64,000 bases of DNA from Hyalangium minutum (GTDB lineage: Bacteria; Myxococcota; Myxococcia; Myxococcales; Myxococcaceae). Position 1 is the stretch's first letter, and every line of letters starts with the position of its first letter. The stretch covers positions 1,165,043 to 1,229,042 of the forward strand of contig NZ_JMCB01000003.1 in the NCBI RefSeq assembly GCF_000737315.1, in the 5' to 3' direction. The position numbers and the translations under genes are program-made. A model generated the notes under the pieces. That model saw only the letters and a program-made list of their open reading frames with translations, ran no database searches and had not been told where the DNA came from. Shown in pieces: positions 3,001 through 63,568 of the stretch.

Positions 3001-4484
3001 GGAGACCCCTCGGCAGCAGCCAGGCTCGCGCAAGGCGGAGCGTGCCGCGGCAAGCGCACCTCGAACCGGGTGCCCTCTTCCTCGGTGGAGGACACCTCGA
3101 TGTGGCCGCCGTGGGCACGAACAATCTCGTGCACGATGTAGAGGCCCAGACCCAGGCCTTGCGAGAGCCCGCGATCCCGGTGCCCCTCACCCCGGCGAAA
3201 TGGATCAAAGAGATGGGGCAGTAAGTCCCCGGGGATGGGAGGACCGTCGTTGTGAACCGTGAGGAACACTCCGTCCGGCGTGCCCCGGAGCCATACCTCG
3301 ACGGGACCACCGGGCGTCCCGTACTTGAGCGCATTGCCCATCAGGTTCTGCACCACCTGGGTGAGCCGGCCGGGATCCCACGCCCCGTAGCCATCCCCGT
3401 CCATGCGCACCCGGACGCGCCCGCCTCCGTGGTGAACCAGTTCCACCTCTTCGCTCACCTCTCGCACGAGCGCAAAGAGATCGAAGTGCTGGCACTGCAC
3501 CGGAATGCCCCCACCGAGCCGGCTGCGGGTCAGATCGAGCAGGTCTCGGATGAGGCGCTCCATCCGCTCGGCCGCCACCGTGATGCGCGTGGCTCCTCGG
3601 CTCACCGCCTCGGGCTGCTGAGTCCGGTGCAGCACCCGGGCCTGCAGGAGAATCGCCTGCAGCGGCCCTCGCAGATCGTGCCCCACCACCCCCAAGAGGC
3701 GCTCTCGGAACTCCTCCGTCCGCCGCCGCTCCGTGGCGTCCCGCACCACCAGCGCGTAGCCCCGCAGGCCCCCCTCCTCATGGTGCAGGGCGCTCATCGT
3801 CATGTCCGCCCAGAAACGGCTGCCGTCCTTGCGCTGACACCAGCGCTCGCCGGTGAAGTGCCCCTTCTGAGCCGCCTCGGCCAGCTCTCCCCGGGGATGC
3901 TCCTCCTCCTCGGGGGCGAGCAGCAGGCGGAAAGGCTGCCCCAGCGCCTCGGGCTCGCTGTAGCCCGTGACGGCCTGCGCCCCCGCATTCCACGAGGAGA
4001 TGCGCCTCTCCGCGTCCACGAAGAAGATGGCATGACCCTTCACGCCCTCGATGACGAGCCGGAGCGTCTCCCGTGACTCCAGCAGGGCGCGGCGCTGGCG
4101 CCCTCGCTCCAGGGCGAAGCGGACGGTGCGCGGCAGTTGCTCGTACGCATCGAGCGTCTTGGGCAGGTACTCCTCGAGCCCCTCGGGCACCGCCTCCAGG
4201 ACCGTCTCCTCGCGGGTGGTTCCCGTCAGCATGATGACGGGGATGCCCGGGAGCCGCAGGTGAATCCTGCGCAGCAGCTCGAGGCCATCCGCCCAGGGCA
4301 GGTTGTAGTCCAAGAGGGCCAGATCGAACCCGCCCTCATCGAGCGCCCGCTCCCACTCCTCCGCCGTCGCCACCTCGAGGATCACCACGCCCTGGAAAGC
4401 ACGCCGCAGGGTGCGCGCCGCCATGAGTCGGTCCGCCGCGCTGTCGTCGACCACGAGGACACGCAAGGGAGTCGGAGCGCTCAA
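2997..4484 (-). CDS. Hybrid sensor kinase (REC-PAS-HisKA-HATPase)
   Basis: RVLVVDD and LLDYNLP receiver, PAS (ISSWNAGAQAVTGYS), VVGHDLRGPL H-box; probable TTG start at 4484 with GGAGG RBS, overlapping the upstream TGA (ORF-track start at 4886 is over-extended). Confidence 0.9.
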   Translation of the reverse strand: MSAPTPLRVLVVDDSAADRLMAARTLRRAFQGVVILEVATAEEWERALDEGGFDLALLDYNLPWADGLELLRRIHLRLPGIPVIMLTGTTREETVLEAVPEGLEEYLPKTLDAYEQLPRTVRFALERGRQRRALLESRETLRLVIEGVKGHAIFFVDAERRISSWNAGAQAVTGYSEPEALGQPFRLLLAPEEEEHPRGELAEAAQKGHFTGERWCQRKDGSRFWADMTMSALHHEEGGLRGYALVVRDATERRRTEEFRERLLGVVGHDLRGPLQAILLQARVLHRTQQPEAVSRGATRITVAAERMERLIRDLLDLTRSRLGGGIPVQCQHFDLFALVREVSEEVELVHHGGGRVRVRMDGDGYGAWDPGRLTQVVQNLMGNALKYGTPGGPVEVWLRGTPDGVFLTVHNDGPPIPGDLLPHLFDPFRRGEGHRDRGLSQGLGLGLYIVHEIVRAHGGHIEVSSTEEEGTRFEVRLPRHAPPCASLAAAEGSP

Positions 4485-11410: not shown

Positions 11411-11499
11411 GTAGGTGGGCGGCGCAGGACGTGAGGCGTCATCGCCTCTGTCTGGAGCAGTGCCCTAGCGTGCAAGCCTCTCGCAGCTGGGGGGTGCCC

Positions 11500-13599
11500 A
11501 TGAGTGCAGCGCTGGGGCCGGCATGGCAACGGCTGAGGCAGAGCCATGGGCCGCTGCTCTTGAGCATGGTGCTGCTGTGGAGCGGCTGCGTGCCGGTGCA
11601 CGGCTCGGCGCCCGCGCTGCTGTTCAACCCCAGCATCACCGCCTTCGATAGCCAGGTCAGGCCTCGCGGCCGCAGACAGCGGCGCTTGGCGCAGCCTCCA
11701 GCACCTCGCTCGGAGGACTGCCCCACCGCGCCTGAAGGCTGGCCGGAGCAGGCTGGCAGCGACGAGGAGGTGCTAGGGCCGCTGCTGGCCTGCGGCTCCG
11801 CGGTGGGCTTCCTCCAGTTGCAGCGCCAGGTGGACATGGCCCAGGTCCTTGAGCGCTTGGGCGACTGGAGCGCAGTGCGACTGGGAGCGCTGGGGCCGCT
11901 GCGAGACAGCCGCGCCGCCGAGGTGCTCACCCGCAAGAGAGCTTCCTTCCTGCTCAAGGCCACCGAGGAGTACGGCGCCTATGCGCAGGTGTTCGCCCTC
12001 TTCATTCTCCACTCCTCCTGTGACGACGAGCTGCAAGCGCTGCTCACGCTGTTGGCCTCACACAAGCAACTGTCCCAGACGCTGGGCACCCTGCCCGCGG
12101 TGCGCCAGGAGCTGGAGCGTCGGGGGCTGCCGCTGTCCTCCTTCCCCGAGCGCGCGGAGCGGACGGGGGATGTGCTCCGTGGGCTGGGACGCGCGGGCAG
12201 GGACGCGCTCAACACCTCCCCAGTGAGTGACGGGGCGCGCTTCGCGAACATGAGCGCTCAGGCTCGGCAGATGCCTGCGCCTTACCAGCAGGCCCTGCAC
12301 CAGTTGGGACAGGCGATGACACTGGAGCACTTTGCCCCGGACAACGTAGCGCTGGGCAGCTTTGACCAGCTGACGTTCGGGGTGCCGCTGGGCTTCTATC
12401 ACCTGGGCCAGGGCACGGTGCACGGGCTGCAGTCGCTGCAAGAGGGGCAGTACGAGCAGGCCACCCGCGAGCTGGTACCTGCGGCGCTGCTGGTGGCGCT
12501 CTACGCGGGCGGCAAGGGCGGCCGCTACTTGGCCTCTGGGGAAGGGAGCGCCCTGCGCCCAAGACTGCCAGAGCTGCGTCTGGAGACGCTGCGGCACGTG
12601 GCGTGGCAACTGTCCGAGCGGCTGGGGCTGGAGGGGCTGGCGGAGGTGGCCCGCTACGTGCGCGCCAGCCGTGAGGCTGCAGTGTTCGTCACCGCCGGAG
12701 GCGAGCCCGCAGCGGTGGCCTTGTACGAGGCCCGGGGCAACCTGGCCCGGGCACAGGCCACTCTGGCCAAGGCCCTGCCTGAGAGCACCGGCGCCGCTGA
12801 GCCCAGGCCCCCTTCAGGCGCAACATTGGGAGGACTGGCCTCGCTGGTGGACGAGGCCGCAGGCCACACGCGCGAGGTGGTGGAGGCCAAGCTGCTCCAG
12901 GTTGAGCTGGAGACTCAGGGCCCCCGCCTGCCAGCAGACCCCGCGCTGCTGCGCAAGCTCCAGGCCACGCTCGACACCCCGCCCCCCGGGGTGCCCGAAG
13001 GCTCCCCCTTGTGGAGCGATTACCTCGCCTACCGGCGCGCTCGCCTCGCCCTGGTGGAAGAGGGCACTCCTGCCAAGGGCCCTCTGCGCTGGGAGCCCTA
13101 TGAGCGCTTGCGCGGCGCCTTTGCACGAGGGCTGGCCTTCGAGCGCTTCATGATCTCCGTGCTGCGAGAGGACGCGGCCCTGCCGCCCACCCAGCGTCGC
13201 TGGCTGAGCGCCTTCACCCAGCCTCGCATCGAGGTCCACGTGGGCCTGTCCAAGCCTGATGTGCCTGGGGTGCGCTTCGCGGATGTGCTCGTCATCGAGC
13301 AGCGCCCACCCTCAGGCCAGCCACCCCGTGTGGAGACCTTCAGCTTCAAGAGCCGCTTCCTCAAGCCGCTCGCGGGCGAAGCATTGGAGGCACCCATGTT
13401 GATGGATGCACGCGCCGCACAGGAGTATTACGGCGGCAGGGTGAACATCCGGCGCTCCTCCCTCAAGGGCAGCGTCCAGGTGCAACGCGTCCGCCTCGTT
13501 TACGAGGGCGGCAGCCGCATGCCCAATCAGTACCTCCTGAATCGTGCCATTGAGAACGTCCAGGAGCATGTGAAGGGAGTGGAGGTGAGCATTCAATGA
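11500..13599 (+). CDS. Putative lipoprotein polymorphic toxin with C-terminal restriction-endonuclease-fold (PD-(D/E)xK-like) domain, SitA-like architecture
   Basis: Hydrophobic stretch and lipobox LLWSG-C; helical middle region; C-terminal GLAFE...RFADVLVIE...ETFSFKSR; coupled downstream gene. Confidence 0.65.
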   Translation: MSAALGPAWQRLRQSHGPLLLSMVLLWSGCVPVHGSAPALLFNPSITAFDSQVRPRGRRQRRLAQPPAPRSEDCPTAPEGWPEQAGSDEEVLGPLLACGSAVGFLQLQRQVDMAQVLERLGDWSAVRLGALGPLRDSRAAEVLTRKRASFLLKATEEYGAYAQVFALFILHSSCDDELQALLTLLASHKQLSQTLGTLPAVRQELERRGLPLSSFPERAERTGDVLRGLGRAGRDALNTSPVSDGARFANMSAQARQMPAPYQQALHQLGQAMTLEHFAPDNVALGSFDQLTFGVPLGFYHLGQGTVHGLQSLQEGQYEQATRELVPAALLVALYAGGKGGRYLASGEGSALRPRLPELRLETLRHVAWQLSERLGLEGLAEVARYVRASREAAVFVTAGGEPAAVALYEARGNLARAQATLAKALPESTGAAEPRPPSGATLGGLASLVDEAAGHTREVVEAKLLQVELETQGPRLPADPALLRKLQATLDTPPPGVPEGSPLWSDYLAYRRARLALVEEGTPAKGPLRWEPYERLRGAFARGLAFERFMISVLREDAALPPTQRRWLSAFTQPRIEVHVGLSKPDVPGVRFADVLVIEQRPPSGQPPRVETFSFKSRFLKPLAGEALEAPMLMDARAAQEYYGGRVNIRRSSLKGSVQVQRVRLVYEGGSRMPNQYLLNRAIENVQEHVKGVEVSIQ

Positions 13600-14936
13600 A
13601 GCTGTTGACCGGGACAGACTTGAACCGGGAGGACGCCCTCTGCCTGGAGTTCAGAGGGACATATGACGCGAAGGTGAGACTGGAGCACGCGTTGGAGCCC
13701 TTCCTCCAGGTGCTGGAGCAGTATGCGGGGGAGTGGATGCCGAGCCTTGTCAAAGGCAAGCGGCGGCGCACCTACTCCCGCGCCGCCTTCTGGAAGGCAC
13801 TCCAAGATAAGGCAGATGACAATGTCTCGACCCTCTACTTGGAGCGCCCCACCGAGCCCGCGGTGTCACTGGAGCTCACTCTCTTTCGCGCGGAGGCACC
13901 CGGAAAGCTGAGAGTCATTCTCCTGGCTCAACCCTTCTCCTTCTTCGCGCAGGAAGAGCGCTGCCGCGAACTGGTGGAGTTGGTACGCGCCTGGGCCTGC
14001 CACTACCCCACCTCCCATGCCTTCGCAGGCAGCTACGCCGACAGTCTGTTGGCGGACTCGCCCTGCTTTGGCCGGGACATGCAGACCACCGTGGCGAATG
14101 GGTTCGACCAGCTCTACGAGGTGTTCTGGCTCAACGTCTTCGGACCCAAGCTGGTGAACCTGTTGGGCCGCGAGCGCCTGCTGTCCACCCCCGCCCACCG
14201 CGTGGAGGAGCTTCCCAACGGCTGTGTGCTGCTCGTCACCTGGCCCATCGCTGCCCACTTCTCACACCCCGAGGCGCGCCAGGCTCAGGCCCGCGCCTTC
14301 GTCCACCTGCGCCCGGAGCTCACCCTGGACACCGTGCTGCGCTCCCTCCACCAGCGCAACACCGCCCTCGTCCCCGTGGAGCCCCGCTTCCACCCGGACG
14401 TGGCTCCCCTCCTCTTTCGCCTCTTGGACAACACCTTCATCAGCGAGCGCCAGCGAAAGATCGCCGAGTTCAACGCCCACCCGTTCCCGGAGCCGGAAGA
14501 GTGGTTGCCCGCCGATGCAGCCCTGCCCTCGGACGTACCGGACACGCACAAGGCCCTGGAGCACCTCTCGCTCCTGGCCGAGTCCCTGGTGGCCATTCTC
14601 CACTCCGAGGTGCCCTCCGTCCTCCAGCAGACCCCCGAATCCCTCACCGACGCCGACCTCGACTTCTGGACCTGGAGCTTCCCGGAGCGATTCGAACGGG
14701 ACCAGATTGACGGCCGGCTGGTGCCTGCCATCGGCGCCTACCTGGGCGAGGTGATGGTGAAACACCTCGGCGGCCAGTGGATTGCCCGCAAGAAGCTGGA
14801 AGAGTCCCAGGTGCGCGTCGGCTCGCGCGTGTGGCTGCCCTTTCTGCGCGCCCACAAGTCCATGCGCTCGTGCCAGTCCCTGCTGGACTTCTCCCTCACC
14901 CAGTTCTACCGCGCTGCCGAGCGCCACCGCGGCTGA
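13596..14936 (+). CDS. Probable cognate immunity protein
   Basis: ATGA overlap with toxin stop, no signal peptide, C-terminal AIGAYLGEV...GGQW motif typical of immunity-like domains. Confidence 0.55.
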   Translation: MKLLTGTDLNREDALCLEFRGTYDAKVRLEHALEPFLQVLEQYAGEWMPSLVKGKRRRTYSRAAFWKALQDKADDNVSTLYLERPTEPAVSLELTLFRAEAPGKLRVILLAQPFSFFAQEERCRELVELVRAWACHYPTSHAFAGSYADSLLADSPCFGRDMQTTVANGFDQLYEVFWLNVFGPKLVNLLGRERLLSTPAHRVEELPNGCVLLVTWPIAAHFSHPEARQAQARAFVHLRPELTLDTVLRSLHQRNTALVPVEPRFHPDVAPLLFRLLDNTFISERQRKIAEFNAHPFPEPEEWLPADAALPSDVPDTHKALEHLSLLAESLVAILHSEVPSVLQQTPESLTDADLDFWTWSFPERFERDQIDGRLVPAIGAYLGEVMVKHLGGQWIARKKLEESQVRVGSRVWLPFLRAHKSMRSCQSLLDFSLTQFYRAAERHRG

Positions 14937-15176
14937 GCTTCCGGGCCTCGCTCTCCGGCAAGCCGCGGAAGCAAGCCGGATCCCCCCCTTTTTCGCTCAC
15001 AGTCCCACATGGGAAGTGCCCACCTGGGCTCACACGAGGCGGGCAGTAGGAAAAGCCGTGCCCGGGGACATTCCTGCGGACCCTCAACCGAAGAAATTAC
15101 GGCTCCCTCCCCTCCCTTCAGGGCAGCCGACCTGTGCAAAGGGTTGATTTTCCTGGAACTTGAGGCTTCGGGCGCG

Positions 15177-15193
15177 TTGGCCAGCGCTTTGCT
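15177..15193 (+). promoter_or_regulatory. Sigma54 (-24/-12) promoter
   Basis: TTGGCCAGCGCTTTGCT: GG-N10-GC spacing with TTGCT; RBS GGAGG at 15213-15217 and ATG at 15227 follow. Confidence 0.6.
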
Positions 15194-15226
15194 TTAGCTC
15201 CGGGCGTGACGCGGAGGGCACCAGAG

Positions 15227-15742
15227 ATGACGGAGCGGGCGAAGCGGGCTGCGGGAGTGGCGAGGGTCTTTACGCAGCAGCCGGAGCGGCTCGCGGCGGC
15301 GTGGCGGCGGGTGCGGTGCATGGGGGGCTCGCAGGCCCATCCGCCCCAGAGCCTGCTGGATGGGCTGGTGGAGCCCTTCATCCGCGAGGTGGGAATGAAC
15401 CTGGCGGGGGCGAACAGCAGCGCCTGGACGCGGACGCGCGCGGTGCTGCGCCTGTCTCCGGAACGGGGCGCGCGGGCCCTCTATGAGGAGTTCGCCCTGC
15501 TGCGCCGCTGCATGGTGGACGCGGTGGAGGTGCTGGGCGGCGGGGATTCGGAGCGCGCGGTGGTCAACCGCAGCGTGGACGAGGCGGTGGACTCGGCGGT
15601 GGCGCTGCTGCACCGCCTGAGGGATGTGGCGGCCGAGGGGCCTCGGGTGCCCTTCGGGGGTTTGGTGGTGGAGTGGTACGAGCGCTCCTCGGAGGTGCGG
15701 GCCCAGCCCGGCGCCGAGCCCGCTCGAGCCGCGCTCCACTGA
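15227..15742 (+). CDS. Conserved-looking all-helical hypothetical protein (weak resemblance to RsbRD_N-type domains)
   Basis: Good RBS and codon bias; LYEEFALLRR helix motif; alternative GTG start at 15206. Confidence 0.72.
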   Translation: MTERAKRAAGVARVFTQQPERLAAAWRRVRCMGGSQAHPPQSLLDGLVEPFIREVGMNLAGANSSAWTRTRAVLRLSPERGARALYEEFALLRRCMVDAVEVLGGGDSERAVVNRSVDEAVDSAVALLHRLRDVAAEGPRVPFGGLVVEWYERSSEVRAQPGAEPARAALH

Positions 15743-15748
15743 GGATGT

Positions 15749-16042
15749 GCCGATCCGTCCGGCTTGACGCTTCCGCGAGGGAGTGTCCGAGGGCCGGCGG
15801 AGGATGGGGGCGTGCCGCGCAGGCGGGGGTCTGTGTGGCGCGAAACGGGGGGCGTGCTCCCGGCATGGGGGCTGGTTGAGCACGCCAGAAGGCCGCTGGG
15901 ACGCGTGGATGGGGGTCTGCGCGCCTCGCCGGTCGGACGGATCGGCCGTGTTGTCGCAGGACTGCTGGGGGTGGTGCTTCGGGGAGGGGGACGCGGGGGG
16001 GAGTGCCTTCGGGGGTGGGCACTCTCTCCCGCGTATTTTTTT
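15749..16042 (+). ncRNA. Candidate structured RNA / long structured 3'UTR with G-run-loop hairpins
   Basis: 16-bp closing stem, GCGA tetraloop hairpin and 4-5 hairpins with GGGG(G) loops; G-U pairs favour the + strand; ends in terminator; no known family recognised. Confidence 0.4.
15991..16042 (+). terminator. Rho-independent terminator
   Basis: 18-bp stem 15991-16008/16017-16034 (3 G-U) followed by A and 7 T (16036-16042). Confidence 0.8.
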
Positions 16043-16054
16043 GGAGCGCGCGCC

Positions 16055-18757
16055 TCAGTGGGCGTCCGCCCACGTCTTCCCCGCGCCCACGTCCACCTTG
16101 AGCGGCACCTTGAGCGTGGCCACCTGGGACATGCACCGGCGCGCCAGCTCCTTCACCTGCTCCACCTCGGCATCCGGAGCCTCGAAGAGCAATTCGTCGT
16201 GCACCTGGAGGAGCATCTCCGTGCGCAGGCCTTCCTTCTGGAGCGCCGCGTCCACGGCGAGCATGGCCTTCTTGATGAGATCGGCCGCGGTGCCCTGGAT
16301 GGGCATGTTGATGGCGGCGCGCTCGGCGGCCTGGGCCACCTGCCGATTGCGCGAGTGGAGATCCGCCATGAGCCGCCGCCGGCCGAACATCGTCTCCACG
16401 TAGCCCGTCTTCCGGGCCTGCATGACGGTGTCCTCGAGGTAGCGGCGGATGCCGGCGTAGCGGGTGAAGTAGCGCTCGATGATGTCGCGCGCCTCCTCCA
16501 CGGAGATGGACAGGCGGGTGGACAGGCCGTGCGGGGACAGGCCGTAGGCGATGCCGAAGTTCACCGTCTTGGCCACGCGGCGCTGGTCGCGATCCACCTT
16601 GTCCGGCGTGGTGCCGAAGATCTCCGCGGCGGTGCGGCTGTGGATGTCCTCGTCATGCAGGAAGGCCTCGATGAGGACGGGGTCCTCGGCGATGTGGGCC
16701 AGCAGCCGGAGCTCCACCTGGCTGTAGTCGGCGGAGACGAGCTGGTGGCCCGGCTCGGCGACGAAGGCGCGGCGGATCTCCCGGCCCAGGTCCGTGCGGA
16801 CGGGGATGTTCTGGAGGTTGGGATCCGTGGAGGACAGGCGCCCCGTGGCGGTAGCCGCCTGATGGTAGGTGGTGTGGATGCGGCCGTCCTTGGCCACGAG
16901 CCCCGGCAGCGTGTCCAGGTAGGTGCTCTTGAGCTTGGAGACGGAGCGGTACTCGAGGATGGCGGCGGGCAGCGGGTGCTGCTCGGAGAGCTTCTCCAGC
17001 ACCTCTTGATCGGTGGAGGGGCCCGTCTTGCCCTTCTTGAGCACGGGCAGCTGGAGCTTGTCGTAGAGGATCGTGGCCAGCTGCGGATTGGAGCCGATGT
17101 TGAACTCCTGGCCCGCGAGCTGGTGGATGTTCTTCTCCTTGGCCACGCACTCGGCGTCCACCTTGGCGGAGATCGTCTGGAGCACGGAAGTGTCCAGCTT
17201 CACGCCCCGGCGCTCCATATTCGCCAGGATGGGCAGCAGCGGCAGCTCCAGCTCGCTCGCCAGCTTCGCGCTCCCCACCTCCTCCAGCTCCTTCCAGAGC
17301 ATGGGAGCCAGGCGCCGGGCCGCATCCGCGCGCTCCGCGTAGGCCTGGGCGAGCTCCTCGGGGTTGTGGTCGGCCAGCGCCCGGGCCTTCTTGCCTCCGG
17401 CGGGCAGCGCGGGCAGCTCCGTGTTCAGCCGCTCGCGGGCCAGATCCGCCAGGGCGTGCTCACGGCGGGACGGGTTGAGCAGGTAGCTCAGCAGCTCCAC
17501 GTCATCATGGGCGCCCTTGAGGGTGAGCCCACCGTTGGCGAGCACCAGGGTGAGCGCCTTGAGGTCATGCCCGCCCTTCTTCACCGCCTCGTCCGAGAGC
17601 AGCCCGCCCAGGATCGAGCCAAAGGCCGCCACCGGCACCTGCTTCGCACCGAGCACCTGGTGGCGCAGCGGCACATAGGCGATGCGGCCATCGGGCAGCG
17701 CGAGCCCCAGGCCCACCAGCGGCGCGGTGAAGGGGGCGCCCTCGTAGGCAGGCACCAGGAACACCGAGCCGGCGGAGCGCGCGGCCTCGGCGAATGACTT
17801 CAGCTCCTCCTCGGTGGTGACAATGGTGGCGGGAGCGGCAGCGGCGGCGGGCGCGGGAGCCTCCGCGGGCTTGGGAGCGGTGGTGTCCGCGGGCAGCTCA
17901 TTCACCAGCCGGTAGAACTCCAGCTCCGTGAAGAGCTGCTTGGCGCGGGCGGTGTCGAAGGGGCGCCGGGCGAGCTGGGCGATGGTGGTGTTCAGCTCCA
18001 GGTCGGTCTTGAAGGTGACGAGCTGCCGGGCCATCAGCAGGGAGTCCTTGTGGGCGGCGATGGCCTCGCGGATCTTCGGCTTCTTCACCTCGTCCAGCCG
18101 GGCCAGCAGCGTGTCCACGTCGCCGAACTGCTGGATGAGCTCCGTGGCCGTCTTCGGACCAATGCCGGGCACCTTGGGGACGTTGTCCACCGCATCGCCC
18201 ACGAGCGCCAGGTAGTCGCGCATCTGCCGAGGCTCGATGCCCAGGCGCTCCTTCACGTCGGCGGGGCCGGTGTGCACGTCCTTCATCGGATCGAAGAGGC
18301 GCACGTCCTCGTCGACGATCTGGATGAAGTCCTTGTCGCCGGTGACGACCTGGACGCAGAAGCCCTCGGCCTTGGCGTGCTTCGCCAGGGTGCCGATGAC
18401 GTCATCCGCCTCCCACCCGGGCACCTCGAGCACGGGCAGGCTGAGCACCTCCACCACCTTGCGGATGAGATCGAACTGGGGGACCAGATCCTCGGGAGGC
18501 CCCTCGCGGTTCGCCTTGTAGTTGGGATCGATCTTCTGACGCTCGGTGCGGCTCTCCTTGTCGAAGGCGAGCGCCACGTGCGTGGGCTGCAGATCCTTGA
18601 GCGCCTTGAGCACCATGCGCGTGAAACCGAGCACGGCATTGGTGGGCACCCCCTTGCTCGTGGTGAGCGGGGGGATGGCGTGGTAGGCGCGGAAGATGAA
18701 GCTGGAGGCGTCGATCAGCGTGAGGACGGGCGCGGAGCGCGTGGGGCTCGGGACCAT
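16055..18757 (-). CDS. polA: DNA polymerase I
   Basis: 5'-3' exonuclease (LIDASSFIFRAYHA, EADD), polymerase motifs SADYSQVELR, AKTVNFGIAYG, LLQVHDEL. Confidence 0.98.
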   Translation of the reverse strand: MVPSPTRSAPVLTLIDASSFIFRAYHAIPPLTTSKGVPTNAVLGFTRMVLKALKDLQPTHVALAFDKESRTERQKIDPNYKANREGPPEDLVPQFDLIRKVVEVLSLPVLEVPGWEADDVIGTLAKHAKAEGFCVQVVTGDKDFIQIVDEDVRLFDPMKDVHTGPADVKERLGIEPRQMRDYLALVGDAVDNVPKVPGIGPKTATELIQQFGDVDTLLARLDEVKKPKIREAIAAHKDSLLMARQLVTFKTDLELNTTIAQLARRPFDTARAKQLFTELEFYRLVNELPADTTAPKPAEAPAPAAAAAPATIVTTEEELKSFAEAARSAGSVFLVPAYEGAPFTAPLVGLGLALPDGRIAYVPLRHQVLGAKQVPVAAFGSILGGLLSDEAVKKGGHDLKALTLVLANGGLTLKGAHDDVELLSYLLNPSRREHALADLARERLNTELPALPAGGKKARALADHNPEELAQAYAERADAARRLAPMLWKELEEVGSAKLASELELPLLPILANMERRGVKLDTSVLQTISAKVDAECVAKEKNIHQLAGQEFNIGSNPQLATILYDKLQLPVLKKGKTGPSTDQEVLEKLSEQHPLPAAILEYRSVSKLKSTYLDTLPGLVAKDGRIHTTYHQAATATGRLSSTDPNLQNIPVRTDLGREIRRAFVAEPGHQLVSADYSQVELRLLAHIAEDPVLIEAFLHDEDIHSRTAAEIFGTTPDKVDRDQRRVAKTVNFGIAYGLSPHGLSTRLSISVEEARDIIERYFTRYAGIRRYLEDTVMQARKTGYVETMFGRRRLMADLHSRNRQVAQAAERAAINMPIQGTAADLIKKAMLAVDAALQKEGLRTEMLLQVHDELLFEAPDAEVEQVKELARRCMSQVATLKVPLKVDVGAGKTWADAH

Positions 18758-18828
18758 GTCCCGGCCTTAGCGCGGCTCCCCTGCCCTGTCCACGCTTGTC
18801 ACAGGCGGCACAGCGAGAGCCTGCCGCC

Positions 18829-21069
18829 CTACTTACACTGCAGCTCCTCTTTCTTCTTGGCCATCTTCTCCTCGAGCCCGTCGCCCGGCACGGCCCAGTT
18901 GGCGACCTCGGCCAGCTCCGCGCAGCTGCCCGCGCCGCCAAACAGCTGCGTCCCCCGGGTGGAGCAGACGTTGGAGAGCACGCGGATCAGGTCCGTGTTG
19001 CCCTTGTAGAACCGGAAGCCGATCTTCCACAGCTTGCAGGCGCGCAGCGGATCCTCGCGCTTGATCCAGTCGCGGCCGCGCTCGTAGGCCTTCTCCGCGA
19101 TGTCGTTCTGGATGTTCTTCCGGTAGAACGAGGGCACCGTCTCCCACATGTCCATCATCAGGCGCTTGTCGATCTCCAGCGCCTCATCGAAGGGCTCGGC
19201 GGCCCTCTCCAACTCGCCGGCGGTGAGCAGCGTCTGGCCCGTCTTGAAGAGCTGATCCACGGTGCCCACGTCCTTGATGAGCAGGTCCGTCTGCCCGTGC
19301 AGCGCGGCCTGCTCGTAGTTGGAGCGCACCTTCTGGAGCTTGGAGAGCGACTCGTTGCCGCGGCCGGCCCAGTAGTCGAACAGGGCGGAGTTCATATAGG
19401 CGTTGGAGTACTTCTCCTTGAACATCCGCTTCACCCTGGCAGCAGGGCTGTCCGTGTCCTCGCGCTCGCTGTCGTAGCCGGCCGCGCACTTCCAGGTCTC
19501 GGCGTTCGGATCCAGCTTCAGACGGGCCTGGAGGAAGCGGACGAACATCTTGTCCTTCGGGCGCCACTGGCGCTTGCCGACGCGGCCCTCCAGGGACAGC
19601 GTGTAGCCAATGGGTGGCTCGAGGTCCTCGCGCGTCTGCTTCTGGCACCAGAAGCCCATGTACCGGTCGCACCGGGGCACCGCCGCCTGCCACTGGTTGT
19701 CATCCAAGTAGCGCTTGCAGTCGTCCAGGGCCTTCTTCTTCACCTGCACCAGGGCCTCGTCCACCTTGATCTTCGCGCGGCGGAAGTACTGGCTCTCCTT
19801 GGGGATCTTCTGGAACTGATCGAGCGCCTCCTCTTCCTTGAGGCGCGTCAGCAGCTTGGTGCCCGCCTCGAAGTAGGCGTGGGCCTCTTTCTCGACCTTG
19901 ATCTTCTTGATGAGGGTGTTGACCTCGGTGTTGATGGGATCGAGGACGCGGGCCTCCTCGCACTTGGCCTCGGCCTTCTCCCACTGGGGCTCGCTGCCCA
20001 TGTCCGTGGATGCGAACGAGCGGCACTGGCTCAGCAGCTCCTGGACCTTCTCCTTGAAGTTCTCCCCGACCACCTCCGGACCATCCCCGGTGGGGAAGTC
20101 AGGCGGCGGCGGGGGCGGCGTGGTCAGCTGCTTGACGACGCCCGCGGCCAGCAGCAGCGACACGGCGGCACCGGCCACGATGAACAGCTTCTTCTTCTTG
20201 TTCGCGGCGGGCGGTGCGTCGCTCGGGTCCACCTTGCCCTTGCCCTTGCCCTTGACGGCGGGGCCCGCCCCGCTGCGATCCCGGCGCACAGGCACATTGG
20301 AGGGCTCGTCACCGGACTCGTACACCACCTCCACCATGCCGAACTGGATGATGTCGCCGGGGTTGATCTCCACCGGCTCCTGGCCCAGCCGCTCGCCGTT
20401 GAGGAGCGTGCCGTTGGCGCTGCCCAGATCGCGCAGGAACACCGCCCCACGGGGGTTGCGCTCCAGCTCCGCGTGCTTGCGGCTGATGGAGTCATCCTCG
20501 AGCATGACGGCGGCCGGCGGCGCGCGGCCCACCACCAGCTTGCCCTTGAGGGGATAGGTCTTGTTCGCCCAGGGCCCCGTCAGGCCCCGGAGCACCGGCT
20601 GGGGTGCCGCCCCGGCGGGAGCGGGGTTCGGCGCCGAGCGCTCGCCCTTGGCCAGCCGCTCACCGGGCGGACGGGCCGGCTTGAGGGTGGGCAGCGCGCG
20701 GGTGGACCTCGGGCCGCCCTCCTCGGGGGCGGGCTCCGCCGGAGCCGGCTTCGAGGCCCGGCGCGCACTGGTGGCCGGACGGCCGCCGCCCTTGAGCTTC
20801 AGCTCATAGTCCCCGAGCACCACCTGGGCCTGGGGCGTGAGCACCACCGCTTCGCCAATGCGCTCTCCGTCGACATAGGTGCCATTGGCGCTGCTGAGAT
20901 CCTCCAGCATCACCTTGCCACCCTCGACGAAGATGCGGGCGTGCTGGCGCGACACGCCGCCCTCGGTGAGGACGAGCTCATTGATGTCCTGGCGGCCAAT
21001 CTTCAGCTCGCCGGACAGCTCATGCTCGGTCTCACTGCCATCTGGATGCTTGACGACCAGTGTGGGCAT
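18829..21069 (-). CDS. kilD: Double-FHA, TM, TPR-like protein of the Kil/Tad cluster
   Basis: Two FHA motifs (IGR..VSRQHA..DLSSANGT; VGR..ISRKHA..DLGSANGT), Lys-rich stretch then TM, helical Cys-containing C-terminus; symbol from synteny with M. xanthus Kil cluster 1. Confidence 0.75.
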   Translation of the reverse strand: MPTLVVKHPDGSETEHELSGELKIGRQDINELVLTEGGVSRQHARIFVEGGKVMLEDLSSANGTYVDGERIGEAVVLTPQAQVVLGDYELKLKGGGRPATSARRASKPAPAEPAPEEGGPRSTRALPTLKPARPPGERLAKGERSAPNPAPAGAAPQPVLRGLTGPWANKTYPLKGKLVVGRAPPAAVMLEDDSISRKHAELERNPRGAVFLRDLGSANGTLLNGERLGQEPVEINPGDIIQFGMVEVVYESGDEPSNVPVRRDRSGAGPAVKGKGKGKVDPSDAPPAANKKKKLFIVAGAAVSLLLAAGVVKQLTTPPPPPPDFPTGDGPEVVGENFKEKVQELLSQCRSFASTDMGSEPQWEKAEAKCEEARVLDPINTEVNTLIKKIKVEKEAHAYFEAGTKLLTRLKEEEALDQFQKIPKESQYFRRAKIKVDEALVQVKKKALDDCKRYLDDNQWQAAVPRCDRYMGFWCQKQTREDLEPPIGYTLSLEGRVGKRQWRPKDKMFVRFLQARLKLDPNAETWKCAAGYDSEREDTDSPAARVKRMFKEKYSNAYMNSALFDYWAGRGNESLSKLQKVRSNYEQAALHGQTDLLIKDVGTVDQLFKTGQTLLTAGELERAAEPFDEALEIDKRLMMDMWETVPSFYRKNIQNDIAEKAYERGRDWIKREDPLRACKLWKIGFRFYKGNTDLIRVLSNVCSTRGTQLFGGAGSCAELAEVANWAVPGDGLEEKMAKKKEELQCK

Positions 21070-21075
21070 GACGGA

Positions 21076-22893
21076 TCAGTCCTCGCGGAAGATGCTCATG
21101 TTCACCGGGATGCCCTTGCGCTGAAGGTCATCGTAGAACTTGGGCACGAAGCCGGACGCCACGAAGCGACCGCGGATCTTGTTGTCATCCGTGAAGCCGT
21201 CCTGCTTGTAATAGAAGATGTCCTGGAGGGTGACGATGTCGACCTCCATGCCGGACACCTCGGTGATGAAGCAGATCTTCCGCGTGCCGTCCGAGAAGCG
21301 CGTCTGCTGCACGATGATGTGAACGGCGCTGGCGATCTGCTCGCGGATGGCCTTCACCGGCAGCTCCATGCCGGACATGAGCACCATCGTCTCCAGGCGG
21401 GCGATGGCGTCGCGCGGCGTGTTGGCGTGCAACGTGGTGAGCGAGCCGTCATGGCCGGTGTTCATGGCCTGGAGCATGTCCAGCGTCTCGCCGGAGCGGC
21501 ACTCGCCCACGACGATGCGATCCGGACGCATGCGGAGGCAGTTCTTCACCAGGTCTCGGATGGTGATGGCGCCCTTGCCTTCCAGGTTGGGCGGACGGCT
21601 CTCCAGCTGCACCCAGTGCTCCTGGGGCAGCTGCAGCTCGGCGGCGTCCTCCACGGTGACGATGCGCTCACCTTCGGGGATGAACGAGCTGATGATGTTG
21701 AGCGTCGTCGTCTTCCCGGAGCCCGTGCCGCCGGAGATGACGATGTTCTTCCGGGCGCGCACGCACATCTCCAGGAACTCGGCCATCTGCGCGGTGACGG
21801 TCTTGTACTTGATGAGATCCTGGATCTTGAGGGCGTCCTTCTTGAACTTGCGGATGGTGATGCAGGGGCCCTTGAGCGCCAGCGGCGGGATGATGGCGTT
21901 CACGCGGCTGCCGTCCTTCAGGCGCGCGTCCACCAGCGGGCTGGACTCGTCGATGCGGCGGCCGATGGGCGCCACGATGCGCTCGATGACGCCGAGCACC
22001 GCCTGGTTGGAGGAGAACGTCTTCTCCGACAGGGTCAGCTTGCCACGCTGCTCGATGTAGATCTGGCTGGCGTGGTTCACCATGATCTCGCTGATCTCCT
22101 CGGACGCGAGGAACGCCTCCAGCGGCCCAAGCCCCAGCGCCTCATTGATGACGTCGGTGAGCAGCTCCTCCCGGTCCACGTCCTCGGGGAGCTCACCGTC
22201 CGCGTCCATCTGATCGATGATGTCGCGGATGGCCTTCTCGGTGCGGCGCCACAGCTCCTCGTCGCCGAGCCGGTCCATGTCCATGCGGCGCAGATCGAGG
22301 TACTCGATCAGCCGGTCATGGATTTCCTTCTGGAGGCGGGTGTAGCGCTCCAGGCGCGGATCCACCTTGCGCTTGTTCTTCTGGAGCGCGGCGGCCAGTG
22401 AGGCCGGCATGTTCTTCTTGGGCTCGGGCGCGGCGGCAGGCGCGGCGGAGGAGGCGCGCACGGGCATGGGCGCCGGAGGCTCCTCCTCGTACGGCTCCTC
22501 GTCCTCGTAGCCCTGCTCGTCCTCGTAGCCCTGCTCGTCCTCGTAGCCCTCTTCGGGCGGAGGATCCTCTCCGGCGGCCGGGGCGGCGCCGGTGCTCAGC
22601 TCATCCAGCGGCTCGACGTTGATGATGTAATCGCCGATGTAGACCTTGTCCGTGGGCTTGAGGACCTGCGGCGCAGCGATCTTCTTGCCGTTCACGAACG
22701 TGCCGTTCGTGGACTTCATGTCCAGGACGATGAACTTCCCGTCCTTGGAGACGATCTTGGAGTGGTACTTGGAGACGTTGCCCTTGGCCAGAACGATGTC
22801 GTTCCCGGCCAGGCGGCCAATGGTGATCTCGTTCTTCTCGAACTCGATCTGCTCGGTGCCGCCGCCCTTCTCGGCAAGAGTGACTAGAAACAT
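21076..22893 (-). CDS. kilF: CpaF/TadA pilus ATPase with N-terminal FHA domain
   Basis: FHA (IGR..VSKYH..STNGT), Walker A GGTGSGKTT, LRMRPDRIVVGE, MNTGHDG; start ATG at 22893. Confidence 0.9.
   Translation of the reverse strand: MFLVTLAEKGGGTEQIEFEKNEITIGRLAGNDIVLAKGNVSKYHSKIVSKDGKFIVLDMKSTNGTFVNGKKIAAPQVLKPTDKVYIGDYIINVEPLDELSTGAAPAAGEDPPPEEGYEDEQGYEDEQGYEDEEPYEEEPPAPMPVRASSAAPAAAPEPKKNMPASLAAALQKNKRKVDPRLERYTRLQKEIHDRLIEYLDLRRMDMDRLGDEELWRRTEKAIRDIIDQMDADGELPEDVDREELLTDVINEALGLGPLEAFLASEEISEIMVNHASQIYIEQRGKLTLSEKTFSSNQAVLGVIERIVAPIGRRIDESSPLVDARLKDGSRVNAIIPPLALKGPCITIRKFKKDALKIQDLIKYKTVTAQMAEFLEMCVRARKNIVISGGTGSGKTTTLNIISSFIPEGERIVTVEDAAELQLPQEHWVQLESRPPNLEGKGAITIRDLVKNCLRMRPDRIVVGECRSGETLDMLQAMNTGHDGSLTTLHANTPRDAIARLETMVLMSGMELPVKAIREQIASAVHIIVQQTRFSDGTRKICFITEVSGMEVDIVTLQDIFYYKQDGFTDDNKIRGRFVASGFVPKFYDDLQRKGIPVNMSIFRED
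22498..22550. repeat. 18-bp tandem repeat x3 (GYEDEQ linker) inside the ATPase gene
   Basis: CTCGTCCTCGTAGCCCTG at 22498, 22516, 22534. Confidence 0.9.
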
Positions 22894-35246: not shown

Positions 35247-37274
35247 CTACTGCTCCTCGCCGTCCGTGGACGGAGGGGAATCCTCCAGCGGCCGGATGGA
35301 GGGATCCACCTCGGCAGGGCCTTGCGAGGGCTCTGTGGGCTCTGTGGGCTCGGGGGCCACCTCCTGCACCGCCTCCTCCGCAGGCTTCGGGGCCTGCTCC
35401 TCGGGGTTGGCCGGGCTCTCGGATTTGGCCGGGGCCTCGGAGGGCTGCGGCACCGCCTTGGGAGGCCGGGGACGTGGAGGACGCGGCGCCTCACCCGCAG
35501 GGTTGGGTGAGGGTGCAGCTTTCTGGGTGGGCTCCTCGGGCGGGGCGTCTTCAGAAGGAGGGGGCGGCTCGTAGGCCTCCGAAGAGGGCTCTGCGCTTCC
35601 GGTGGGCTTTGTCGGAGCACTCGATGACGAGGAGAACAGGGATCCGATCTTGCTCTTCAGCGACTCGGGCATGAAGAGCACCGCGAGGCCCAGGATCACG
35701 ATGCCGAGCACGATCCAGAGCCCCCGGCGCGCGGGAGGCCGGAGACCGGTCCAGGCCCGGGAAACGCGGGACACACTGGACAGCTCCGAGGTCTCACTGT
35801 CGTCCTCGGTGGGCTTCGTCTCCGGGGCCGAGGCCGCTGCCTGGGACTCCGTGGGGCCCAGCGTGAACACCCCCATCTTCGCGGGGCGCCGGGGCTCACG
35901 GGCCGAGGACGGAGCATCGATCGTGGTCTTGTCAGGAGCGTCGTCCGCGCCCGCCGCCGCCAGGCCCGGCACGGGGCCGATCTGGGTGGGCGCATCCTCC
36001 GCGAAGGGCTTGGCCACCGGAATCTTGCGCGACGGAGGCTCGGTGTTCTTCTTGGGCGCGGCGGATGGGAAGGGCCGGGCCTTGGGAGGATTGACCCGCC
36101 CGCTGGGAGACGAGGCGCGCGAGGGAGGCGGCCGCACGGGCTCCGGCGGAGGCACCGGCTTCTGGACAGGCATCGACATCATCGGCGACGTGAGGTGCAT
36201 GTCGTCGAGCTCGTCCGCGGAGACCGCACCATCCAGGGTCTCCTCATCCCTCAGCGCCGCGACGACCTTGCTCACGCGCTCGTCGTCGTGGCTGGCGTAG
36301 TCCAGGAGCGAGAGCGTCTTCAGCCGCTTGTCGGCGAAGAGCGCCTGCATCAGCTCGGCCACGGACTCCTCGTCGAACATGACCGGGCCCACGGCGACTT
36401 CGAGGGCCTTGGCCATCTCGCGGCCGGTGGCGAAGCGCTTGGCGGGGTCCTTGGCGAGCGCCTTCATCACCACCGCGTCGAGCGACTCGGGTACGTCCGG
36501 GTTGTTGGCGCGAGGCGGAGCGATCTCCGCGTTGGCGATCTGCCGCATCATCGCGTCTTCGTTGGTGGTGTCGAACAGCCGCTGGCCGCACAGCATCTCG
36601 TGCAGCAGCACACCCGCGGTGAACAGGTCGCTGCGCCCATCGAGATCCTGGCCGCGGACCTGCTCGGGGGACATGTAGCCGCTGGTGCCCTTGACCATGC
36701 CCACGCGGGTGCGGGCGATGCGGCCCTTGGCCTTGGCGATGCCGAAGTCGATCACCTTCACCACGCCGTCGTAGGTGATCATCACGTTGCGCGGAGCCAT
36801 GTCGCGGTGCACCACCGCCACCTTGCGGCCCGAGGGCGCCGTGAAGTTGTGGGCGTAGTGCAGGCCCAGGCAGACGTCCCGGGCAACGCGGGCCGCGAAG
36901 CCGATGGGCAGCGGGCGCACGTAGCTGGCCGCCATCATCACCTGCTCGAGGTTCTGGCCGGGCAGGAACTCCATGGCCAGGTACAGCTCGTCGTCCTCGA
37001 GCCCCAGATCGAAGACCTGGCCGATGTTCGGGTGGGAGAAGGCGGCGGTGATGCGCGCCTCATCCAGGAACATCTTCACGAACTCTTCCGTCTTCACGTC
37101 CGGAAGGATCTGCTTGAGCGCGACGTACTTGCGGAACCCCCCCGGCCCGGAGGTGAACGCCAGGAAAAGCTCCGCCATGCCCCCCACGGAGAGTCGGGTG
37201 AGGATCTCGTACTTTCCGATTTTCCGGCCACGATCTGGATCCGTGGTCCCATTGGAGGATGCCTGTTTGGGCAT
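35247..37274 (-). CDS. Membrane Ser/Thr protein kinase, tandem paralog of the neighbour
   Basis: Same kinase motifs (HRDMAPRN, GTSGYMSPE); TM GLWIVLGIVILGLAVLF; low-complexity Pro/Glu tail. Confidence 0.93.
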   Translation of the reverse strand: MPKQASSNGTTDPDRGRKIGKYEILTRLSVGGMAELFLAFTSGPGGFRKYVALKQILPDVKTEEFVKMFLDEARITAAFSHPNIGQVFDLGLEDDELYLAMEFLPGQNLEQVMMAASYVRPLPIGFAARVARDVCLGLHYAHNFTAPSGRKVAVVHRDMAPRNVMITYDGVVKVIDFGIAKAKGRIARTRVGMVKGTSGYMSPEQVRGQDLDGRSDLFTAGVLLHEMLCGQRLFDTTNEDAMMRQIANAEIAPPRANNPDVPESLDAVVMKALAKDPAKRFATGREMAKALEVAVGPVMFDEESVAELMQALFADKRLKTLSLLDYASHDDERVSKVVAALRDEETLDGAVSADELDDMHLTSPMMSMPVQKPVPPPEPVRPPPSRASSPSGRVNPPKARPFPSAAPKKNTEPPSRKIPVAKPFAEDAPTQIGPVPGLAAAGADDAPDKTTIDAPSSAREPRRPAKMGVFTLGPTESQAAASAPETKPTEDDSETSELSSVSRVSRAWTGLRPPARRGLWIVLGIVILGLAVLFMPESLKSKIGSLFSSSSSAPTKPTGSAEPSSEAYEPPPPSEDAPPEEPTQKAAPSPNPAGEAPRPPRPRPPKAVPQPSEAPAKSESPANPEEQAPKPAEEAVQEVAPEPTEPTEPSQGPAEVDPSIRPLEDSPPSTDGEEQ

Positions 37275-63492: not shown

Positions 63493-63568
63493 TGGCAGGC
63501 CAGGAGGGATTCGAACCCCCAACACGCGGTTTTGGAGACCGCTGCTCTACCGTTGGAGCTACTGGCCT
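63493..63568 (-). tRNA. trnW: tRNA-Trp (CCA)
   Basis: 76 nt cloverleaf, anticodon loop CTCCAAA, GTTCGAA T-loop, encoded 3' CCA. Confidence 0.98.

Follow-up and report, generated by a model that had tools for sequence, protein, structure and literature searches.

A conserved structured RNA with unpaired G-tracts, located directly 3′ of a small gene in the Myxococcaceae

The subject of this analysis is a 64,000-nt stretch of the Hyalangium minutum genome (contig NZ_JMCB01000003.1, positions 1,165,043 to 1,229,042), hereafter the window, and within it the + strand segment 15749–15946, which is almost certainly the core of a conserved structured non-coding RNA under selection. This RNA occupies a 312-nt gap (15743–16054) between the end of a + strand open reading frame (ORF) of 171 amino acids at position 15742 and the convergent polA gene. 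The core of about 200 nt, from the 5′ to the 3′ strand of its closing stem P1, was delimited by a covariance model and by covariation, and together with a variable tail and a terminator it extends to 16042. The RNA is a new family, uncatalogued in Rfam 15, and by analogy it may be filed with the decoy RNAs and the small RNAs (sRNAs) derived from 3′ untranslated regions (3′UTRs). The best explanation as a whole, including a mechanism that we infer for the RNA, stands at roughly even chances.

The minimum free energy (MFE) of the + strand of 15743–16054 was −194.5 kcal/mol (z −8.51, with 0 of 100 shuffles as low), against −122.5 kcal/mol (z −3.84) for the − strand. Chance folding of GC-rich DNA does not account for this fold, which is strand-specific, the asymmetry between the strands amounting to 72 kcal/mol. 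Its seven helices (P1, P1b and P2–P6) are nested: P1 leads to a junction with P2 and P1b, P1b leads to a junction with P5 and P6, and P6 encloses P3 and P4. The closing stem P1 (15749–15764 paired with 15931–15946, inverted repeat I2 of the inverted-repeat scan) was found in the scan and in the sequence exactly as an initial annotation of this DNA had described it, with 13 contiguous Watson–Crick pairs and 16 bp in total: the 13-nt core, 15749–15761 against 15934–15946, is 100% complementary, and G-U, C-G and U-G pairs lengthen it to 16 bp. The other helices are those of the MFE fold of the + strand. P2 (15766–15774/15779–15787) is a 9-bp hairpin that had been foreseen together with its GCGA loop; the hairpin is in the fold, but the GNRA loop is restricted to the window's clade, loops elsewhere being variable and 4–11 nt long. 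The three further hairpins that had been proposed to carry G-run loops all form as well, namely P3 (15811–15824/15829–15842, loop GGGG), P4 (15851–15864/15871–15886, loop AUGGGG, with an internal bulge and a conserved 3′ strand GGU-GAGC) and P5 (GGAUGGGGGUCC, 15902–15910/15915–15923, loop GGGG). P1b (15788–15792/15924–15928) and P6 (15794–15800/15893–15899, 5′ strand CCGGCGG) are new relative to the initial annotation, which had used the name P6 for a weaker hairpin at 15961–15975; the latter is present in the window but sits in a non-conserved tail.

The covariation called for by that annotation was examined by projecting the window's own fold onto a structure-blind MAFFT alignment of the homologous regions, with 500 shuffles as control. 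In this alignment 84.7% of the cells form standard pairs, compared with 37–44% when the partners are slid by one to three columns, and compensatory double changes occur at 30 pairs, a number that none of the 500 shuffles reached. Realignment with the covariance model raised these values to 89.4% and 36 pairs, although such an alignment leans towards the model. RNAalifold applied to the raw MAFFT alignment recovered P1, P2, P1b and P5, and P1–P5 were present in all 17 homologues that were folded one by one. P1, P1b and P5 are 98–100% paired, and each of P1, P1b, P2 and P5 contains two to five covarying pairs. For P1, 100% of the cells are paired in 45–46 sequences, with compensatory changes at four pairs; P1b is 98.6% paired, and one of its pairs changes from A-U to G-C in six or seven sequences; P2 is 93% paired, with double changes at five of nine pairs and a loop variable in both length and sequence; P5 is 98.4% paired, with double changes at four of seven pairs. 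In the covariance-model alignment, P3 has double changes at 11 of 12 pairs. The basal helix of P4 is 81–83% paired with three covarying pairs, and 67% of the cells pair in the distal part of this hairpin. Support is lowest for P6, in which the inner 4 bp are paired in 91% of the cells by the covariance model and 66% by MAFFT, and the outer pairs in about 50%. The identity of the core is 71% where the proteins encoded upstream are about 60% identical; in the gene itself, codon positions 1 and 2 are 72.5% identical and position 3 is 57% identical.

Several U-G pairs are invariant, such as the final pair of P1, which is U-G in all 46 sequences. Since they would be A-C mismatches on the opposite strand, the functional strand is the + strand, and the earlier suggestion of RNA-level selection on this strand, which was made from the G-U pairs of the window, gains support from their invariance and from the covariation. 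The + strand is also the more stable one in all 31 homologous intergenic regions. The region does not encode a conserved peptide: no reading frame is conserved across it, the homologues differing throughout by insertions and deletions of 1, 2, 4 and 5 nt, and the ORFs that overlap the RNA are of the spurious sort common in GC-rich DNA.

A feature of the − strand could be imagined instead, either a C-rich extension of the polA transcript that serves as a Rho-loading (rut) site or antisense regulation of polA. The − strand RNA, with about 47% C and 26% G, does have a typical rut composition, and no U-run follows the terminator hairpin on that strand, so that polA transcription may enter the region. 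However, the + strand is favoured by U-G and G-U pairs that do not vary and by the asymmetry of 72 kcal/mol, matches of the covariance model on the − strand are weak and partial, and the element stays with the small gene rather than with polA in the Archangium gephyra group and in loci L004 and L034, as described below. This explanation, largely refuted by the linkage and by the G-U pattern, is highly improbable.

The distribution of the RNA was followed with a covariance model, CM R1, built from 45 core sequences; the window core scores 154.5 bits. Among 62 genome loci, retrieved by a profile of 25 homologues of the 171-amino-acid protein, the model found one + strand copy per locus, 46 of them full-length (104–170 bits) and 9 truncated by contig ends. 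A gene-independent scan of metagenomes with a DNA pattern gave 68 matches, 64 by chance and 4 to true homologues, and all four of the latter have the small gene upstream and polA convergent. Stigmatella erecta also carries the RNA (153 bits). In total, 51 full-length and 9 contig-truncated loci have the RNA directly 3′ of the same 171-amino-acid gene and on the same strand. They belong to at least nine genera of the Myxococcaceae in the broad sense (Myxococcus, Corallococcus, Pyxidicoccus, Citreicoccus, Archangium, Cystobacter, Vitiosangium, Hyalangium and Stigmatella), so the distribution is narrow. The region after the gene is 240–372 nt long in the 30 loci with sequence to compare.

In one locus, that of Cystobacter fuscus NCWS (a long-read assembly; L053:3001-3690), the frame of the small gene crosses the RNA, with its stop at 3690 and the RNA start at 3533, and the protein match covers residues 1–130. 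The RNA itself is intact there (104.9 bits), and a frameshift in the gene, or a faulty assembly of it, is the probable reason for the overlap.

The constant neighbour of the RNA is the upstream gene. The convergent arrangement with polA (16055–18757 on the − strand, outside the element; Pfam DNA_pol_A, E 2.3e-160), which the initial annotation had mentioned, holds as a layout, but linkage of the RNA to polA was rejected: in the Archangium gephyra group, L004 and L034 the RNA adjoins the small gene despite 1–2.8 kb before polA, remaining with that gene when about 2 kb intervenes. The insert of about 2 kb between the RNA and polA in L039 (3813-5848, − strand), and likewise in L038 and L043-L046, contains two ORFs on the minus strand, which overlap and encode 207 and 486 amino acids. 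By motif alone, a KAHH motif near the C-terminus of the 486-amino-acid product recalls AHH-type nuclease toxins that have an immunity gene next to them. The order of gene, RNA and polA has also been kept in the window's clade, which is rearranged further upstream, since a different gene precedes the small one in Stigmatella and in the majority of the other genera. This gene encodes a Peptidase_MA_2 protein ending KPTLH* and is preceded by DivIVA and YggU-like genes.

The 16-bp P1 stem has the form of a terminal inverted repeat, and the RNA-less orthologous site looks empty. The region could therefore be a miniature inverted-repeat transposable element (MITE) or another repeat bounded by P1, and the many draft assemblies that break inside the RNA might be taken in the same sense. 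The many near-identical copies with target duplications expected in this case were looked for in the window and in the loci, and none were found. BLAST detected no second copy of the region in the 64-kb window, the rest of the window gave no other CM R1 match below E 0.7, no direct repeats (target-site duplication) flank the RNA, and collections of plasmid, phage and viral contigs contained no similar sequence. Because the RNA is single-copy in the window and at each locus, strictly syntenic and without matches in these collections, a MITE was excluded and the RNA is a lineage-specific innovation at a fixed site. Moreover, the contig breaks are internal, at model positions 38–81 and not at the ends of the element, and the covariation exceeds that of all shuffles. 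A repeat of this kind, or the chance folding of GC-rich DNA, has only a minimal probability. An ancient MITE origin followed by exaptation is possible, but it would concern the history of the element and not its present function.

The assembly breaks deserve a separate remark. Draft Illumina assemblies of Corallococcus, Pyxidicoccus and Myxococcus often end inside the RNA (L008, L012, L013, L015, L017, L019, L020, L025, L027 and L059; also L018, L035-L037 and L047), some of them at the model positions just mentioned, right before the first G-tracts, and others about 265 nt past the gene, in the G-rich tail. As the breaks are internal to the element, they likely reflect coverage drop-out in G-rich structured DNA rather than a repeat, and the RNA is probably under-represented in draft genomes.

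The second characteristic of the RNA, besides its fold, is its G-tracts. The earlier count of about nine runs of at least 5 G was confirmed as nine, located between 15806 and 16015, compared with 69 across the 64-kb window, and no run of at least 5 C occurs in the same 300 nt. This asymmetry is general: the 31 homologous regions compared contain 43–49% G (near 45%) and 24–29% C (near 26%), with 6–12 runs of at least 4 G per region, whereas runs of at least 4 C are absent from 28 of the 31 and number one in each of the other three. Five tracts of the core are unpaired and invariant or nearly so. Two of them lie in junctions, namely tract 1 (15806–15810) in the P6-to-P3 junction GGAUGGGGGC, where G60-G62 are invariant in the core within the consensus aGgGgG, and tract 3 (15847–15852) in the P3-to-P4 junction AAACGGGGGG, where G102-G104 are invariant or nearly so. 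The other three occupy hairpin loops: tract 2 (15825–15829) that of P3, with invariant loop G residues, tract 4 (15867–15871) that of P4, with an invariant loop GGGG, and tract 5 (15911–15915) that of P5, with G165-G169 invariant. The conserved loop and junction motif can be written (A/U)NGGGG(G)(U/C), GGA being merely incidental in it, and the junction strings CUUGA, GUCCGAG and GGUGAGC are likewise conserved.

Such tracts allow G-quadruplexes (G4), and G4Hunter peaks were obtained at 15805–15871 and 15959–16022. A G4 as the main fold nevertheless appears unlikely, as G4-aware folding retains the hairpins P1–P5 and the helices are supported by covariation; the G4-aware MFE contains one local two-tier quadruplex in the P6-to-P3 junction, with a gain of about 8 kcal/mol. 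Together with the complex conserved architecture and the invariant junction nucleotides, this gain is what speaks for a sensing or catalytic RNA, that is, one that responds to a small molecule or ion, for example as a K+-dependent hairpin/G-quadruplex switch, or that sets its 3′ end or stability by self-cleavage. The covarying hairpins persist under G4-aware folding, though, and the junction hosting the predicted quadruplex is shorter (GGGAGGGAG) in Myxococcus and Corallococcus. Nor is there a same-strand gene downstream that would make a classical riboswitch, the next gene always lying on the opposite strand (polA, or the two minus-strand ORFs in Archangium), so that a riboswitch or 5′ leader was rejected, and no ribozyme or riboswitch family matched in the Rfam scans. 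A sensing or catalytic function is accordingly improbable in our estimation.

The position of the RNA relative to its neighbours points in another direction. The stop codon of the 171-amino-acid ORF is at 15740–15742, P1 begins at 15749 and the terminator spans 15991–16042. The RNA therefore occupies the place that defines a 3′UTR-derived sRNA, on the same strand as a coding sequence, directly 3′ of it and ending at the mRNA terminator, and this layout is common to all homologous loci. The initial annotation had supposed a 3′UTR position under sigma-54 control, which agrees with a conserved promoter before the gene and the RNA directly after it. The gene itself (15227–15742, +), identified by its reading frame and its homologues, has a ribosome-binding site GGAGGG located 8 nt upstream of the ATG at 15227. 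A sigma-54-type promoter (TGGCCAGCGCTTTGCT, 15178–15193, +) with GG-N10-GC spacing precedes this ATG by 49 nt, and TGGC(A/C)-N7-TTGCT, matching 8–9 of 11 positions of the consensus TGGCAC-N5-TTGCW, lies 49–58 nt ahead of the ORF start in almost all of the 62 loci, including those lacking the RNA.

Between the promoter and a conserved block further upstream lies an IHF-like site (CAAAGGGTTGATT, 15137–15149, +), whose pattern YAANNNNYTGAW has a fixed position near −90 relative to the ATG in 42 of 61 loci, compared with 1.1% of random 100-nt windows; judged from this pattern, it would bind IHF. The upstream block itself (GAAGAAATTACGGC, 15090–15103, +, about −135) was recognized by eye, with the variants AGAAATTACGG, TAGGATTTACG or AAAATCTACAG at a similar distance in each of 20 loci, and may possibly be the enhancer-binding-protein site (upstream activating sequence) of the sigma-54 promoter. 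C-rich tracts at 15050–15120 were considered as pairing partners of the G-loops and rejected, since conservation of these tracts does not extend beyond the window's clade.

No sigma-70-like promoter was detected in 15000–16600. With the sigma-54 promoter conserved, no sigma-70-like site and a variable sequence in the last 20 codons of the gene, the place that an internal promoter would need to occupy, co-transcription of the RNA as the 3′UTR of the gene is the simplest arrangement and, on these sequence features, a probable one.

The gene product gives few indications of function. Homologues of the 171-amino-acid protein are confined to Myxococcaceae-like bacteria; it has no match in Pfam or NCBIfam, and a hidden Markov model search of 1.84 billion representative proteins returned 84 clusters only, with no relative giving a function. 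Its AlphaFold2 model is mostly helical, with a predicted local distance difference test (pLDDT) score of 83.5, and Foldseek found no significant match in the PDB, the best being globin-like helical proteins (E 0.36). In the translation, acidic and basic residues are about equal in number, and the last 20 residues are variable among homologues. The RNA could be a dedicated partner of this protein, serving as a 3′UTR site for its autoregulatory binding or as a component of a ribonucleoprotein (RNP). The strict same-strand adjacency in 51 full-length and 9 truncated loci would be well explained in this way, as would the fact that a protein family of no known function is as narrow as the RNA. However, six more diverged loci (L050, L054, L055, L057, L058 and L061, at 45–57% identity) keep the gene, and CM R1 finds no RNA in them. 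The protein also has no recognizable RNA-binding domain, its charges are balanced and the globin-like matches are not significant. A dedicated partnership thus appears distinctly unlikely.

The RNA core is followed by a U-rich linker (CGUGUUGUCG, 15947–15956, +), which was present in every tail inspected and is UGUUUU-like in most of the homologues, and in which a 3′ end or a processing site may be situated. Next comes the variable G-rich tail (15957–15990, +), which cannot be aligned between genera and is absent from the Archangium/Cystobacter group. The terminator hairpin with U7 that had been seen earlier was recovered by a terminator scan: it is an intrinsic terminator (15991–16042, +) made of an 18-bp hairpin (15991–16034; 12 of 18 pairs are G-C) with the 8-nt loop UCGGGGGU, followed by U7. 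Hairpins with the loop ACGGGGGU or UCGGGGGU and a U-run occur in Hyalangium, Myxococcus, Corallococcus and Pyxidicoccus loci at −34 to −43 kcal/mol (−30 to −43 kcal/mol for the equivalent hairpins of the homologues overall), and in these four genera the terminator loop carries GGGGG. In Archangium/Cystobacter (L026, L030, L034, L048, L049, L052 and L053) the terminator, about 10–45 nt after P1, consists of the last codons of polA (..WADAH*) and an inverted copy of them, and its loop holds the polA stop codon (TCA on the + strand). Judged by its sequence, this hairpin seems to act as a terminator in both directions for the two convergent units.

These terminators bear on the possibility that the whole element is purely a cis-acting part of the 3′UTR, which protects the mRNA from 3′ exonucleases and may insulate the convergent pair from read-through. 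Its constant location just 3′ of one and the same gene, with a convergent gene beyond it, its extremely stable fold combined with a strong terminator and the shared bidirectional stop suggested by the Archangium/Cystobacter arrangement are all in keeping with this role. Against it, a stabilizer needs stems and not unpaired G-tracts and junctions that are invariant across nine genera, and the identity of the core equals that of codon positions 1 and 2. Furthermore, diverged relatives manage with very short gene-polA spacing (6 and 31 nt in two of the six RNA-less loci), and a terminator alone would suffice. We regard an exclusively cis-acting role as rather unlikely.

The claim that the RNA matches no known family was checked at two levels. 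At the gathering threshold, Rfam 15 found only a tRNA in the whole 64-kb window (63496–63568, −, 61.8 bits), and a permissive scan of 15500–16300 gave merely matches with E 2.9–9 (mir-207, mir-3151 and Chlorobi-1). Chlorobi-1 (RF01696) has the loop AAUGGGGG, and the P4 region (15842–15897) aligns with it through the same AUGGGGG loop. This likeness is limited to one loop of a 67-nt motif from a different phylum, and the score is at chance level (11.9 bits against a gathering threshold of 50, E 4.4).

The CsrB/RsmZ/RsmY RNAs are similar in logic, with a short G-containing motif repeated in hairpin loops and single-stranded joiners to form a multivalent decoy. An analogy with such sponges is reasonable, given how little the five G-tracts vary in their loops and junctions. 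The motif of these RNAs, however, is A(N)GGA, while that of the window RNA is GGGG(G); the Csr/Rsm models of Rfam did not match the window RNA, which is not known to be linked to CsrA. The window RNA is a nested multi-junction structure closed by a 16-bp stem, in contrast to the loose strings of short hairpins of the CsrB/RsmZ type, and it would depend on a sigma-54-type promoter and a 3′UTR position, whereas CsrB, RsmZ and RsmY are GacA-dependent.

The enterobacterial 3′UTR-derived sRNAs (CpxQ, SdhX and the NtrC/sigma-54-dependent GlnZ) are Hfq-dependent, 60–200 nt long and act through one linear seed. They share with the window RNA the same-strand location directly after a coding sequence and the use of the mRNA terminator, and promoter control would be inherited in the same manner, in this case from sigma-54. 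The window RNA differs from them in being large and highly structured, and in belonging to a lineage reported to be without Hfq. G-tracks of the Staphylococcus aureus RNA RsaI bind the C-rich RsaG and RsaE, and the actinobacterial 6C RNA has C-rich loops. The common element here is a homopolymeric run of G or C exposed in loops as an interaction surface, and seeds rich in C and U, whose usual targets are Shine-Dalgarno regions, can be titrated by a G-rich RNA. The window RNA is not homologous to these RNAs in sequence or structure, 6C, with its C-loops, is the mirror image, and no C-rich partner RNA was found in the present analysis.

The closest comparison within the myxobacteria is Pxr of Myxococcus xanthus, a regulatory RNA of similar taxonomic range. 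Its expression depends on a sigma-54 response regulator (PMC10217877), and it is a much shorter RNA of three stem-loops whose locus lies downstream of pxrR/MXAN_1078 (PMC10217877, PMC5684412). Identity with Pxr was rejected, the window RNA being about 200 nt long, with seven helices, and located beside a hypothetical gene and polA. A retron RNA, considered on account of a long inverted repeat in a Myxococcus relative, was also rejected, without a formal test: the upstream ORFs have no Pfam match and hence no reverse transcriptase domain, and polA lies downstream.

Taken together, these comparisons lead to the following proposal. The sigma-54 promoter would transcribe the small gene and the RNA as its 3′UTR, and the transcript would end at the intrinsic terminator, perhaps followed by trimming in the U-rich stretch that borders P1. 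A stable RNA of 200–290 nt, clamped by P1, would remain. This RNA would act in trans, its rigid fold offering multivalent GGGG(G) sites to a partner able to recognize runs of G, which might be an RNA-binding protein or the C/U-rich (anti-Shine-Dalgarno-like) seeds of other RNAs. By analogy with the known sponges, a trans-acting G-tract decoy or scaffold is put forward tentatively, at somewhat less than even chances. M. xanthus is reported to be without Hfq, and its sRNAs Pxr and MXnc1 to contact Shine-Dalgarno regions (10.1101/2025.09.11.675593), so a G-rich decoy for such sRNAs is conceivable. The most specific form of the idea, a ‘poly-G display’ RNA induced through sigma-54 that titrates C/U-rich RNAs such as Pxr and MXnc1, or a G-tract-binding protein, in an Hfq-less bacterium, is speculative and, as we see it, unlikely.

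Several observations weigh against a trans-acting, co-transcribed decoy. The compact nested fold with its conserved junctions CUUGA, GUCCGAG and GGUGAGC resembles ligand-binding, catalytic or RNP RNAs more closely than the CsrB/RsmZ arrays. Several Archangium/Cystobacter terminator loops have no G-run, so that only the five core tracts are universal. The diverged relatives that have the gene without the RNA mean that the RNA is dispensable for the basic function of the gene. Finally, in Corallococcus a hairpin and a U-run between the gene and P1 could cause separate or attenuated transcription there. The insertion concerned, 35–45 extra nt between the stop codon and P1 (alignment A2, columns 1–45), is found in L010, L016, L018, L021 and L051 and comprises a GC hairpin GGCGCGCAGGAGGCGCC followed by GGGGTTTTG, which is terminator-like.

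On either side of the locus the window contains long ORFs, two of 722 and 446 amino acids with a 4-nt overlap (11431–14936, +) and one of 1201 amino acids (18796–22401, +), none of which has a Pfam or NCBIfam match. The second most G-rich 300-nt stretch of the + strand, near 35268, is unrelated to the RNA: it lies antisense to a 675-amino-acid ORF (35247–37274, −) that is of low complexity by eye.

Note that multi-junction RNAs of about 200 nt with strong covariation are rare and often lead to new biochemistry. The family is ready for submission to Rfam, with about 50 sequences aligned as a seed and a covariance model that works, and its G-tract surface makes the search for a partner straightforward. 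Should the poly-G display be true, an enhancer-binding-protein signal would be converted into Shine-Dalgarno mimicry by at least five GGGG(G) sites, which would rewire the post-transcriptional control of development or predation. Myxobacteria display complex multicellular behaviour, and Pxr was the sole functionally characterized sRNA found in the literature examined; a second conserved RNA would be a new entry point into the post-transcriptional regulation of these bacteria.

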